Of a DNA stretch of 64,000 nt, positions 24,152 to 30,014 are shown in pieces. Source of the stretch: Epithemia pelagica (lineage: Eukaryota > Protista > Bacillariophyta); assembly GCA_946965045.2 (NCBI GenBank), contig OX337229.1:4402001-4466000 (forward strand). Reading direction: 5' to 3'. The notes below the pieces were generated by a model. That model was not told where the DNA came from, did no database searches, and saw nothing but the letters and a program-made list of their open reading frames with translations. The position numbers and the translations under genes are program-made. Each line of letters opens with the position of its first letter. Position 1 is the stretch's first letter.

Positions 24152-27100
24152 TTATTCGCTGTCGGCTGCCACAGACGATGACGAAACCGAGGGTGCCGCA
24201 GCACTTTTCGCAACAGTGGCGGGTGCGACCGAGTCAAAATCTCGATGATACTGTTGCAATTGTTGTTGTTGCTGTTGCAAGGCCAACAAGGATAAGGCTT
24301 GCTGTTCCGTTAGATTGGAAACAAATGGAGGAGTTGACGAGGATGCAGATGGTGAGGTGGAACCAGTCGTAAAAGAAACCACCCGTGGGGGTACGTCGGC
24401 AATACTTCCACTGGGAACAGGAGGAAGGGGTGGGAGTTGCGAAAAGTCAGGATCCAAGCTCCGAGTCAGAGATCCACTTGCGCCTCCCTTGCTGGAATGA
24501 ACGCGACTCCGTTGAATCTTTTGACACAAGACTGGATTGCCTCGTTGGAACTGTGAATGGTAGTATGCACCCTTATCACGACCAGATGAAATGCGTTGGA
24601 AATTGTACATGTGCAATTGACGTTGAAAGGAGGAATACTTGGTTTGATTGAAGTACAAGGGCATTAATTCATTCACAAATCGGTCCGAGTCGTGAACCAT
24701 AAATGCTCGACCATGAGGAAGCCATGAAAGAACAGATACATTACGATCTGATTCCAACTTATCCAAGATACGTTGGAGCTTGAGAGGGAAACTGGTGGCC
24801 ATTTGGCCCGACGAATTTCGTCCATTGCCTTGCTTGTTGTTGCTGCTGTCCACATCAGTTGCTGGATTCCCACTCTCGGTTGTAGACGTGGACGATACCG
24901 ATGGTGATCGATTCGGTTTCGTCTTAGTTGTTGAAGTGTCCACTCTTCGTGGACTTGCTGGTACATGGGCTGCTTGATTAGACGCTGCTGTTGCAAGGCT
25001 TGACAAAAGTGATGGAGCGGACGCAGGGGCAGCACTTGATGACGTGGCTCCTGGAACCAAAGCCAATAGGGAAGACAGGGCATCAATTCCCGATGCTGTC
25101 GCCGAAGTCGTCGAAGCTTGCTGCTGTTGCTGCTGTTGTTGTTGAGCCATGTATTGTAAGACAGCAGCAGTTGCCAAATGTTGCACCGAAGGAGTTGTAC
25201 TAGCAGAAGCACTGTTGTTATCACCACCCAGACCGTGATTGTTGTTATTGGCATTGCTGCTGCTCCGAACCAAACTCTCACTGCTTACGACGCTACTGGT
25301 GGCGGAGGTATTCCTAATTGGAACCACGGCGGGGCAGGCAGGATAATTGGACAAGACAGGTTCTCCATCTGGATTTCCAGCGGCGCGGATGCGGTTGCCA
25401 TTCACCTTACATCGTTGCATTCGTCGGCAGAGAAACTTCATGCCTCGTAAAAACTTTTCGTGATAATAACTCGCTTGGTCAGGTCCGACACCACTTAGTC
25501 GATTAAACCCATAAAGATTTAGTTGCCGAAGAAAACTTGATTTCTTGGTCATTCTGTTGTAAATGAAGAACAAAGGAATGAGCTACTACAGAAAAACACA
25601 ATCATCGTTTTCAAGCAAACACCACTTACACAAAGTACTTGGGCAAGATCAATTGGACAAATTCTTGTTGCTTGTGAATCTTAAAGGAACGACCATGTGC
25701 AAGCCATCCGATAATGTCATCGTGACCATCCCGTTCAATTTCCGATAGTGTCTCATGAAGCTTGAGAGGAAAGGCCGCATTAGGAGTCTTCTCAGATGTG
25801 TTGTTGTTGAGGTTCGCCATGGCATTTTTCTCATCATCCGTGGGAGTTTCGTCGGAATAATCTTGGTACGAGTGTTTGACAAACAAGCGATTGTTGTTCT
25901 TGGGGGTCTTGCCGGGTGGTAACTTTTTGTAGTTGGTGTTATTCCCATACTTGTCTCCGTACGTAGATGCTGGTGTCGAGCGGTCTTCGCCTTGAGAGGG
26001 TGGTGGAGCAGAAGCCGTATCTTCTTGTCCGTGAGCCGGTGAGTCGACTGCCATGGGTTGTGGAGCTCTGGTTTCGCTTGTTTGTGGCTGTGACGTTGCT
26101 GCGAGGTTCTTGTTGTCCTCGTCGTTCTGATCCACTGACATGGTTTGTTGCTGATCTCGAATTTCGGCACTGACGTGCGCCAGCACGTCCATGGAGGATC
26201 CTCGTGAAAGTCGATGCTGCTGCTGAGGCTGGACATCTCGAGAGGCTGGAGAAACGGACTCAAGTGCTGCCGCTTGAATGACAGCGGCCGTAGCCGCTGT
26301 CACAGGATCGCGAGACTGGAGAGGCGAAGAGGAAGTCACTGCGGGGGCTTCTTGAGGAAACAAGGACGACTGTTGTTGTTGTTGTTGCTGCTGCAGCACT
26401 TTGGACGCTTGTAAAGCCTGTTCAATGGACAAGGCATGTGTCGCTTGCTGATGTTGTTGCTGATGTTGATGCAAAGCACTAGCAGCCAATCGTTCCAGTG
26501 CCGCTGTCGCGGCCGAAGACGTTGCATGGGTGGACGGAGTCACAGTCGCTGGAGTAGGAGGTAGTTGGTTGAGACTTCGGGAGGGAACTACGAGACCAGG
26601 TGGTGAGGCTTGAGATCCAGACCATGGGGACGACGGTGATGACGACGTTGCGGTGACTTGTGGTACAGGTGCTGCCGCTCGTGAGTGACTTGCGGCGGTC
26701 GATAAAGATTCTGCTTGTGGATAGACCGCTTGTTGCGGCGGAAGGCGTCCGTTCCAAGAGGATGGTTGCGGATGCGGTTGTACGACGGAAAGACAGGCGA
26801 CCACCGTCAAGGCACCCTGTTGTTCCGTATCAGGGGACGAAGCAATTTGCGAAGGTGGTGCATGATGTTGGGCGGCCCACAATCCACCCACCACAACATC
26901 AATGTGTTGCAATTCCACTCCTTGACGTTGAGTCAGTGGTGCAACTTGATTCATGAGACGATATTGATCGACATGCATCAATTCTTGAGGATTCGCCAAT
27001 TTTGTAGGCACGCCCAATCGAATGTACAATTGCGGTGGGTCGGTTCGTCCCATGGCAGCCGACCACGGAAAGGACAGCATGCCTCTTTCGAGAGCATCTT

Positions 27101-27698
27101 GAAGGGCCTTGCAAGCAGCTTCTGTGGCATCGTCTCCTACCGAGGAGACGCCATGATCCGCATTGTCTTGTGGCAAAAGCGGTGTTGGTGGTGTTTTCTT
27201 GTGATGGATATTTCGAGTAAAGTTGGGAACAATCCCAATTCCAATGGTATGAAACAAGGTTTCTTGTGGTGACTGGGCACTTAAAGAACCATTCACGGCT
27301 GCCACAGCTTGGGTAACCGTTGTTGTTGTCGTGGGTCCACAGTGAGGAGAGCTGCTGTGGCTACTACTACCACTCTGGTTGCTGCTGCTTTGACTGCTGC
27401 CACTAACGGCGGGTGCTCCTACAACTGCATGTTGCTGCGCCGCCGCTGCGGCTTGATGTGCCGACGAAAGGAGTTGAGCACTAGTACCTGCCGCTAATTT
27501 GGCCAAATTTTCCACCAACGTTGCAGCAGTTTCTTTGCGGGCTGTAGCAGCGGCGGCCGCAGCCGCATAGGCAGCCGAATCGACACTGGTGCGGCTTTCC
27601 AATACGGCAGCTGCATCGGCGGCCGTCGAGGGAGGCAAGTACGAATCACGTGCTCCGACGACCTCATTGGTCGTTGGTGAAGAATTGGCTGCTTGCAT
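24152..27698 (-). CDS. Heat-shock-factor-type transcription factor with two HSF DNA-binding domains (1156 aa), exons 27698-25630 and 25553-24152
   Basis: DBD1: FPLKLHETL...GWLAHGRSFKIH...YFVMTKKSSFLRQLNLYGF, completed by a 76-bp GT-AG intron. DBD2: FPLKLQRIL...SWLPHGRAFMVH...TKYSSFQRQLHMYNF. Spliced length 3471 nt is divisible by 3. Confidence 0.93.
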
Positions 27699-30014
27699 AG
27701 TAGCAAGTGTGTTTGTGGATGCTGAATAGAAAAGAATCTTCAGATAGGATCCCTGGCTTTCCTTCTTTGTTTCTCTAGCCTGTGGAGGGAGATCTGGAAT
27801 CGAATGATGGCGTTAAGGGGAAGATGTCAAATGACAATGATGATCAAGTCCAATGTGAGCAATGGATGAATTGAACACTCCTACGATTTGTGTGTATCAC
27901 AATCCGATCCAATGAATGGATGCGTCAGGCTTCGTTTTCTTGTGTTGTTGTTGTTCGCCCACCGAAACGAGAATGCAGAGGACGGAACGAGGGTGACTTT
28001 TATGACATACCTGTGTATTGGTCAAAGAGGAACAGGTGAGGCTTGTTCTAGGTAGAATACAGAGTTGTGATGGAAGGAATCGATCCTAAAAGAGACGAAG
28101 GGATGGGTGTGTTGGTTGTTGGTGGCGCCTCGTTTTCTTGGATGTTCGCTTTTACACATTTCACGCCCTGATTGGTGATCAGAAGCCAACCGAAAAGGAG
28201 GGGTTTGGGTGTGTGCGTTCGTCCACTACCGAAGCTACTGTGCTCGTACGTGTGGGCCGAAACCCGAGAGTGTGGAGTGTGGACTTTGGTGAAGGTGTTT
28301 CGCTGCGGCTGTTTGCAGCGGCAGCGGCACCTTGTCGTGTGTCGTCGTGCATTTCACTGTGGTTGGTCGGCAAATGTCCGCTCGAGATTTCGTTGGTGGG
28401 TTTTGTTCTTCTTCTCGAGTTCTTTGTCGTGGTTGGCATGCGACAATCAGATGGTTCCTGTTTATTTATCATTGAACCTTTGAGCTTTCGAGGCATTCGG
28501 AAACCAGTCCACAGTAAGAGAAAGAGTACTTAAGACACTGGAGGGATCCGACCTCTACGTAGAAGGCATGTAGAGCCCGTACACGAAGAGAGCAAATGAG
28601 AATTGATGGACATCGATGCGTGAGTTCTGGATTTCTTGAATCTACGATCTTTGATGTTCGGGTTCCGAGTCTTTTAACATGTCGAAAAGAACCCGGATGT
28701 CTTCAAACCCCATCGCAATCACATGTTATATATTTGAGATCAATCATAAGAATATAGAAATTCAGAGCGTTGAGATGTATTCGAAATAGCCATATCCCTA
28801 TGATAGAAACAGGACATGGTTGCCGAAGGGACGTGGTTGGTGGTTGGTCAAAAAGGCAACAGTATGAGAACCTCAATTACATCCAGAGCGCTCAACTGAT
28901 GATCCAAAGGCGTCCAATTTGCCATTCGCATCGTGAACTTGAAAGATTCGGAGCTCTCGGTTGTGGTGTGTTCGCATGTCAAAGTTGTGTCGCACTGCAA
29001 ACTCAAGCCTACTTTTTTTAACACAGTTTTGGATCCTTCACTTCCCGAACTTTGCCGCGGTGTTCGCAACCCAACGGAAAAGGGACACTTTCCTTCTCAA
29101 AGCCCTTCAACAGTTTCGAGTGACGATCCCATATGACGGAGTCTGACGTAGATCTGACAAGACCTGACGCACGTCAAGCCCATCTTCGACTGTTCGCATT
29201 TGGTGTACTGTTTGGTCTATTGTCATCAATTCGGAAAGAACGATTCCTCGGCTCGTTTGTGGCCCTTGAAATTGCAGATCTTCCTGACGGGCAACAGAAG
29301 AAGAACAAGACGAACCACGAACGAGCGATCGTGTCCATATGTTCGTATTAGACGCGAACACACAAGTCTGTTCGTCATCCGATGTCTTCCATGTGGGTTC
29401 TGGGCTCTGGCCGGCGTCTGCCAGTCCCGTCGTGAGTCGTGAGACATACAATACCCCGGTAAGCGGTAAGGTGTTGTAGCAAGATCAAGAATCAAGATGT
29501 CGGCTGGGTTTGCTCCCTTCCGCGAGCCCCCCCATGACTATGATTGCAGTGTAATGGGTCTTTACTGAAATGTTTTTATCATAAACATAACATAAAAAAC
29601 GGAATAAACTATATCAAGTGAGTTGTTGTAGTATTATCTGCTCAACGAGCTCGTACTAAACGGAGGCACCATCTCGCGCTTTCCGAGGGGCATCTCAGTT
29701 CCCATCATAAATCTGAAGCCAAACACATGTAGGATGATCATGTGTATACTAGTATCGCGCTGGTAGTCAAGCCTAGTGGTTTGCCCAGACTATCGCCGTT
29801 GAAAGCAAACTAGACCAAACGAGGACATTCAGAGCATCTCATATCTATATATCCTAGAAGATTGACATCCCTTGTAGTCGTAGACGTGGGCACTGCCTGT
29901 TCAGATTTGTTGGGGTCGCCAAATTCATCCCTTTGAACAAAATCGTAGTCCGATCAAAGCGCCAAAGTTTCAAAAGAGACACTGGATTGATAGTAAGCAG
30001 CTGAAGCAGGAAAA

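Follow-up and report, generated by a model that had tools for sequence, protein, structure and literature searches.

In this work we describe a gene on the minus strand of a 64,000-nucleotide stretch of the genome of the diatom Epithemia pelagica (GenBank assembly GCA_946965045.2, contig OX337229.1, positions 4,402,001 to 4,466,000 of the forward strand), the whole of which is referred to here as the window and numbered from its first letter. The product of this gene joins a Lin0512-type domain to two DNA-binding domains of the heat shock factor (HSF) type, and the three domains are carried on one spliced mRNA. From the N-terminus, the protein consists of a low-complexity region, the Lin0512 domain, a linker with two conserved motifs, the first HSF-type DNA-binding domain (DBD1), a further linker and the second such domain (DBD2). 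Taken as a whole, the observations are best explained by a member of a conserved Lin0512-HSF-HSF protein family in which the Lin0512 domain would be a regulatory module, an account that we consider probable. HSFs constitute 34% of the transcription factors of Phaeodactylum and are the most expanded family of such factors in diatoms (PMC4827209).

Gene structure and expression

The gene comprises two coding exons and one exon in the 5' untranslated region (UTR), and is expressed. An open reading frame (ORF) of 690 codons at 25626..27698 on the minus strand contains every motif string that a prior sequence-only reading of the window had quoted as Lin0512-like. The plus-strand frame over the interval in which that reading had placed the domain gives a nonsense translation; the feature lies on the minus strand.

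A transcript contig of 3800 nucleotides (X3), obtained from a run of the same organism, matches the window with 0 mismatches and has both introns spliced out. It covers positions 27796-25630 and 25553-24100 and skips 25554-25629, which is bounded by CT..AC on the plus strand, i.e. GT..AG on the minus strand. The contig extends a further 86 nucleotides past 27796, and the 30 letters nearest the joint are those of the minus strand just upstream of 28011; a three-letter CAG is common to both sides of the joint between the UTR exon and exon 1. The coding sequence starts at the ATG at 27698, which is the first ATG of the contig, and its 2069 + 1402 nucleotides correspond to 1156 codons and, by codon arithmetic, to a protein of about 1156 residues. 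Searches were carried out with the two exon products separately, natural full-length orthologues being taken to represent the complete protein.

No break in the ORF separates the Lin0512 domain from the first half of DBD1, and the two exons are joined in the transcript. The fusion is therefore not an artefact of annotation, and the proposal that the domain is fused to a double-HSF factor is thereby upheld. Transcript-sized contigs of relatives, including one of Entomoneis from MMETSP, also encode the full architecture. A tblastn search found a single copy of the gene in the window.

The Lin0512-type domain

The domain is an island of conservation between low-complexity linkers; the sequence-only reading had likewise placed it in low-complexity sequence. 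Alanine, serine, glutamine, proline and threonine account for 281 of the 472 residues that flank it, and its identity to four orthologues is 43-53% as against 9-19% for the linkers, making it the only well-conserved block in the N-terminal half of the protein. When a segment of 160 residues was searched with PF09585, a score of 26.2 bits was obtained (E value: 8.8e-6, gathering cut-off: 23.4), with only positions 9-90 of the 114-position profile aligned. In a protein-language-model search the top ten neighbours were all Lin0512 clusters.

A model of the domain was built with AlphaFold2 (AF2). The mean predicted local distance difference test (pLDDT) value was 69.7, with the core blocks at 81-91 and two insertions, both described below, under 50. 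Foldseek matched the model to PDB entry 3C8L (E value: 9.4e-6, template modelling (TM) score: 0.73 by target), and a structural search against representatives (VIA) returned the same entry at Z 11.5 with a root-mean-square deviation of 3.0 Å over 110 of 119 residues, followed by the FtsZ C-terminal domain (Z 7.7) and Rid/YjgF (Z 7.0). An Atlas Lin0512 cluster also aligned to the model, at a TM score of 0.74. A possible T-fold (pterin-enzyme-like) assignment of Lin0512 was not borne out, as the fold searches led to 3C8L, the FtsZ C-terminal domain and Rid/YjgF. Entry 3C8L is Npun_R1471 of Nostoc punctiforme, labelled "FtsZ-like protein of unknown function"; it is a true member of the Lin0512 family, because cyanobacterial ORFs nearly identical to it score 143-147 bits on PF09585.

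The Lin0512 identity is indicated alike by Pfam, by profile-profile and language-model comparison and by the fold, and significant matches to Lin0512 proteins were obtained both by profile (PF09585, hhalign) and by structure (3C8L). These results support the assignment of the segment as a diverged alpha/beta domain of the Lin0512 family. We regard the assignment as settled because the orthologues, the wider-family profiles, the language model and the fold agree independently. The domain had been called bacterial. This is too narrow, the nearest Atlas Lin0512 cluster being 88% eukaryotic and mostly streptophyte; the solved structure that matches best is cyanobacterial.

The window domain and the 3C8L-type proteins have the same order of elements (beta-hairpin, helix, strand, helix, three strands) and share the GxG hairpin, the T-x-A-A start of helix 1, (G/A)VP and GG. 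Diatom and cyanobacterial sequences have in common the hairpin GxG, the Thr and two Ala that open helix 1, the V-P of GVP, the GG and an Ala in the last strand. Of the Lin0512 signature (a GxGID hairpin loop, P/A-T-x-A-A at the helix start, (G/A)VP, GG(M/L) and A-x-A-x-V in the last strand), the window has GxG, T-x-AA, GVP, GGL and the last-strand Ala, while the Asp of the GID loop is replaced (GIGIVPNF). Genuine Lin0512 members are stand-alone proteins of about 120 residues, whereas the window domain is one part of a transcription factor of about 1156 residues, with two disordered insertions and with neither the QHGQ loop nor the Asp of GID. In compact relatives the hairpin reads SIGFGID, and DATEAA comes within about 10 residues of it; in the window, 31 disordered residues are inserted between the hairpin and the DATEAA helix. 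The second disordered insertion precedes the last strand in the subfamily of the window protein, which is the most diverged of the Lin0512-HSF-HSF family.

Distribution of the architecture

A word search retrieved four orthologues, one of which is a transcriptome protein of Entomoneis paludosa with precomputed matches to PF00447 and PF09585. A five-sequence subfamily profile was used for an exhaustive hidden Markov model search over 1.84 billion cluster representatives, and 32 proteins of 163-937 residues were found, 29 of them new (E values: 1e-22 to 7e-4). All 29 match PF09585 (E ≤ 0.01; best: 1.1e-10). A domain profile made from the 32 segments matches 3C8L across its full length (E value: 1.7e-5) and was alone among the sequence searches of the PDB in reaching it, and hhalign aligned the diatom family with the cyanobacterial Lin0512 ORFs over 103 columns (probability: 95.9%, E value: 5e-9).

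The Lin0512-HSF-HSF architecture thus marks out a conserved family, which at 50% identity comprises 32 clusters or more. At least one HSF domain was detected in 28 of 34 representatives, and the apparently complete proteins all carry two (phmmer with the DBD2 of the window). The other six representatives end abruptly or just before the HSF domain, as expected of prokaryote-style gene calls that stop at introns. In many relatives the gene call breaks off precisely at ...KYFV in DBD1 or at ...KYFRQTK in DBD2, a pattern suggestive of conserved intron positions in both DNA-binding domains. The only named members of the family are diatoms, namely Entomoneis paludosa and Nitzschia sp. Nitz4. A search of the Atlas with a full-length relative yielded diatom HSF clusters of the plain kind and Skn7, and nothing else. 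Word-index searches for short stand-alone relatives gave none with the five-sequence profile and only P0031 with the 32-sequence profile, and the word and length limits of these searches allow no inference of absence.

The sequence-only reading did not recall any description of this architecture. That holds for the searchable literature, where we found nothing relevant on Lin0512, PF09585, TIGR02058, IPR011719, 3C8L, Npun_R1471 or the Lin0512-HSF-HSF family; it does not hold for automatic annotation, which already pairs the two domains on relatives (UniRef A0A7S2Y922 of Entomoneis paludosa; JGI product name "Lin0512_fam/HSF-type DNA-binding").

To retrieve the cyanobacterial ORFs, a degenerate DNA pattern based on the IEMGMGID motif of 3C8L was used. 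The pattern returned almost only one tight cyanobacterial clade together with chance matches, and no plant or Firmicute members. Three of the loci (L012, L017 and L067) are chance occurrences of IEMGMGID in bacterial proteins of about 400-457 residues that resemble response regulators (DIEMGMGIDG(F/Y)ETCRRL...) and are unrelated to Lin0512. The cyanobacterial Lin0512 proteins (loci L002-L121) are unusually conserved, with 84 ORFs from many genera falling into two clusters at 72% identity.

HSF domains and conserved short motifs

Both HSF domains of the sequence-only reading are real. DBD1 begins at residue 643 of the exon-1 product and runs across the 76-nucleotide intron, which interrupts it after ...LPKYFV; the domain continues as MTKKSSFLRQLNLYGF after the ACAG. 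With PF00447 (cut-off: 22 bits), the exon-2 ORF scored 103.5 bits in two stretches, the full DBD2 and the C-terminal half of DBD1, and in exon 1 the N-terminal half of DBD1 was matched at 24.7 bits. Both domains retain the HSF recognition-helix signature (SFLRQLNLYGF and SFQRQLHMYNF), and on this ground the product is most likely to be a nuclear DNA-binding transcription factor.

Three short motifs are conserved outside the domains. The N-terminal motif ETAATLVENLAKLA coincides with a helix at residues 24-37 in the low-confidence model of orthologue P0003. The linker motif RGSSMDVLAHVSAEIRD lies within an otherwise unalignable linker and takes the family-wide form RxxSM(D/E)(V/M)LAxxSxExR (RxxSMEMLAxISxExR). 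Its Ser-rich first part leads into a short helix predicted to be amphipathic, and the motif could be a phosphorylation-controlled or partner-binding element. The basic motif YGDKYGNNTNYKKLPPGKTPKNNNRLFVKHSY, situated just before DBD1, has the family-wide form YxYKKLPPGxTxKNNxRLFVKH and among the four orthologues is better conserved than the DNA-binding domains themselves. It matches no Pfam family, and may act as a signal for nuclear localisation or as an N-terminal, DNA-contacting arm of DBD1. The positions of all features are listed in Table 1.

Table 1. Features of the Lin0512-HSF-HSF gene in window coordinates
Feature	Position	Strand	Basis or remark
5' untranslated exon	28011..28099	-	at least 86 nucleotides seen in the X3 contig; no ATG
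5' UTR intron, GTATGT...CAG, 217 nucleotides	27794..28010	-	loose end of the X3 record at 27796, and sequence
Exon 1	25630..27793	-	ORF and spliced contig; residues 1-689 and two bases of codon 690
N-terminal motif ETAATLVENLAKLA	27492..27533	-	invariant E, V, L and A columns in orthologue alignment
Lin0512-type domain, residues 143-310 of exon-1 product	26769..27272	-	Pfam, AF2 model, 3C8L match, hhalign via wider family
Beta-hairpin, LFHTIGIGIV	27228-27257	-	followed by inserted loop
Helix, DDATEAACKALQDALERG / DATEAACKALQDALERG	27081-27134	-	follows first inserted loop
Strand and GVP, QLYIRLGVPTKL	26997-27032	-	followed by helix
Strand and GGL, IDVVVGGLW	26877-26903	-	followed by second inserted loop
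Last strand, LTVVACLSVVQ (TVVACLSVV)	26778-26810	-	end of Lin0512 domain
Linker motif RGSSMDVLAHVSAEIRD	26154..26204	-	88-94% identical in orthologues
32-residue basic motif YGDKYGNNTNYKKLPPGKTPKNNNRLFVKHSY	25866..25961	-	97-100% identical in four orthologues
DBD1, HSF type	25403..25772	-	PF00447, exon-1 residues 643-689 and start of exon-2 ORF; tblastn
Intron, GTAAGT...ACAG, 76 nucleotides, phase 2, inside DBD1	25554..25629	-	skipped in the X3 contig
Exon 2, coding part	24152..25553	-	stop codon 24152-24154; transcript reaches at least 24100
DBD2, HSF type	24500..24790	-	PF00447, residues 262-355 of exon-2 ORF

A crude heptad scan with windows of 28 or 35 residues found no coiled coil in the two exon products or in 10 full-length relatives, with GCN4 as a positive control. 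The full-length AF2 model of P0003, the Entomoneis orthologue, is poor (mean pLDDT: 36) and has no long helix outside the DNA-binding domains. Together the scan and the model are weak evidence that the HR-A/B oligomerisation region is lacking.

Four single-base differences from the window (26786, 25865, 25317 and 25319) were seen in other runs of this organism and are likely to be allelic or strain variation. At 26786, C>T produces the substitution V305I, situated in the final strand of the Lin0512 domain, and at 25865, G>C produces Q612E; both agree with the database protein P0001. A contig of 261 nucleotides from a marine metatranscriptome run is identical to positions 24233-24493, in the 3' part of the coding sequence, and hints at expression of the gene in the sea by the organism or a very close strain.

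Discussion

Canonical HSFs (yeast and animal HSF1, and the plant Hsf classes A-C) have in common with the window protein the PF00447 winged helix and the SFxRQLxxYxF recognition helix. They differ in having one DNA-binding domain per chain instead of two, in lacking an N-terminal Lin0512 domain and in possessing the HR-A/B heptad-repeat trimerisation region, of which none was detected here by the crude scan. Closer in logic are fungal Skn7, where an HSF domain is combined with a response-regulator receiver, and the HSF-PAS fusion proteins that exist in haptophytes (PMC4827209), as in both cases an HSF domain is coupled to a globular domain of prokaryotic type that could receive a signal. In the window protein the partner domain is a different one, it is placed N-terminally and not C-terminally, and the DNA-binding domain is duplicated.

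A single chain with two tandem winged-helix domains could read two nGAAn-type units, with the Lin0512 domain serving as a putative regulatory module; the sequence-only reading had raised ligand sensing or oligomerisation as possible roles for it, in place of the HSF coiled coil. The mechanism that we prefer, at a little under even odds and by analogy, is that the protein self-associates through its Lin0512 domain. Such self-association would take the place of the undetected HR-A/B coiled coil and would multiply the count of DNA-binding domains in each complex. It might be tuned by a small ligand that binds where the conserved Gly-rich loops and the helix-capping Thr lie. Small single-domain proteins of the Rid/YjgF, AroH chorismate mutase and IspF kinds are homo-oligomers with ligand sites at their subunit interfaces, and it is because these small proteins of the same fold class homo-oligomerise that self-association is favoured. 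Small members of this class form trimers, a stoichiometry that we do not carry over to Lin0512. Rid/YjgF, AroH, IspF and the FtsZ/tubulin C-terminal domain share the beta-alpha-beta-alpha-beta-beta fold class with the window domain at Z 5-7.7 over 90-110 residues, a range that possibly reflects a mere common arrangement, and no sequence relation to them was detected. The fullest form of the proposal, in which Lin0512 is a ligand-tuned self-assembly module that functionally replaces the HSF trimerisation coiled coil throughout a diatom-wide clade with two DNA-binding domains, is considerably more doubtful and would have about one chance in four of being correct.

Several observations weigh against the overall account given at the outset. 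On the whole 690-residue exon-1 ORF, PF09585 scored only 21.4 bits (E value: 2.7e-4), which is below its cut-off, and the narrower NCBIfam model TIGR02058 (cut-off: 56.85 bits) gave 14.5 bits for the segment and 12.3 bits for the ORF, so that the window domain is a diverged branch outside that model. The AF2 model was built from five sequences and is of moderate confidence. With the five-sequence subfamily alone, hhalign reached only E 0.037, in the same register, and the link to cyanobacterial Lin0512 is therefore transitive; membership depends on intermediate sequences and on the moderate-confidence model. The subfamily of the window protein lacks the Asp of the GID loop (IGIGIVPNF instead), which the wider diatom family retains, and has an insertion of 25-40 residues exactly at this loop; the two changes would remodel the pocket there. 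The heptad scan was uncalibrated on real HSF HR-A/B regions, and diatom HSFs may in general have no coiled coil, whether or not they carry a Lin0512 domain. To our knowledge, the function is known for no Lin0512 protein, and the gene neighbourhoods of 91 cyanobacterial loci offered no functional hint, no neighbour being common to more than 17 of them. The unusual conservation of the cyanobacterial proteins, taken together with the lack of a constant neighbour, points to an important, context-independent role for them.

It is also conceivable, with a likelihood of somewhat less than one in three, that the domain is mainly a sensor of a small molecule (a metabolite or anion) with no role in assembly, and the protein a one-component, ligand-controlled factor of the HSF type. 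The residues shared between diatoms and cyanobacteria form Gly-rich loops (the GxG hairpin, G/A-V-P and GG) and place a Thr at the N-terminus of helix 1, a pattern typical of a pocket and not of a flat interface, and the cyanobacterial members are more than 72% identical across many genera, as would be expected of an enzyme or a tight binder. Precedents for joining a sensor to an HSF are provided by haptophyte HSF-PAS (PMC4827209) and by a Skn7 cluster with PF00072 and PF00447. A ligand, however, is known for no member of the family, and it is beside the putative pocket that the window subfamily replaces the GID Asp and inserts its disordered loop. An improbable alternative is that the domain offers a docking surface for a co-regulator, chaperone or kinase, or retains enzymatic activity. 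The fold class does include enzymes (Rid deaminases and IspF) as well as the contact-mediating FtsZ C-terminal domain, and the presence of more than one partner-binding element is suggested by the two conserved linker motifs (RSSSMDVLAHVSAEIRD and the basic block YGDKYG...KH); nothing specific favours this reading, though, and few residues of catalytic type are conserved (the Asp and Thr of DAT, an Asp and an Arg).

That the likeness to Lin0512 is a product of chance or convergence in a low-complexity region, or the fusion a gene-model artefact, would account for a window Pfam score that straddles the cut-off, for the weak hhalign result of the subfamily and for the lack of any significant match when phmmer with the segment and the five-sequence profile were run against the PDB sequences. 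This explanation is opposed by the transitive chain of significant profile matches, by an independent fold match well above background (Z 11.5 against 7.7 for the next), by the uninterrupted ORF that joins the domain to the first half of DBD1 and by the one spliced contig that spans all parts. It is largely refuted, and we give it very little credence.

Conclusions

The finding holds no surprise of principle, given that fusions of an HSF with a sensor are known (Skn7, HSF-PAS) and that the domain pair already stands in automatic annotation, and its value hinges on experiments that reveal the role of the domain. Little is known on the control of diatom HSFs, or on how DNA is bound without the classical trimerisation region, and the fixed order of the Lin0512 domain, two short invariant motifs and two DNA-binding domains provides a concrete and testable control module. 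The Lin0512 family has a crystal structure but neither a known function nor a literature. That such a domain was recruited to the N-terminal part of a transcription factor suggests a role in binding or assembly, which could guide work on the cyanobacterial and plant proteins. If ligand-tuned self-assembly is true, it would constitute a new switch for factors of the HSF type, in a group of organisms where HSFs are the largest and least understood family of transcription factors, and would open a first way into the function of the orphan Lin0512 family, which is known from cyanobacteria and plants.

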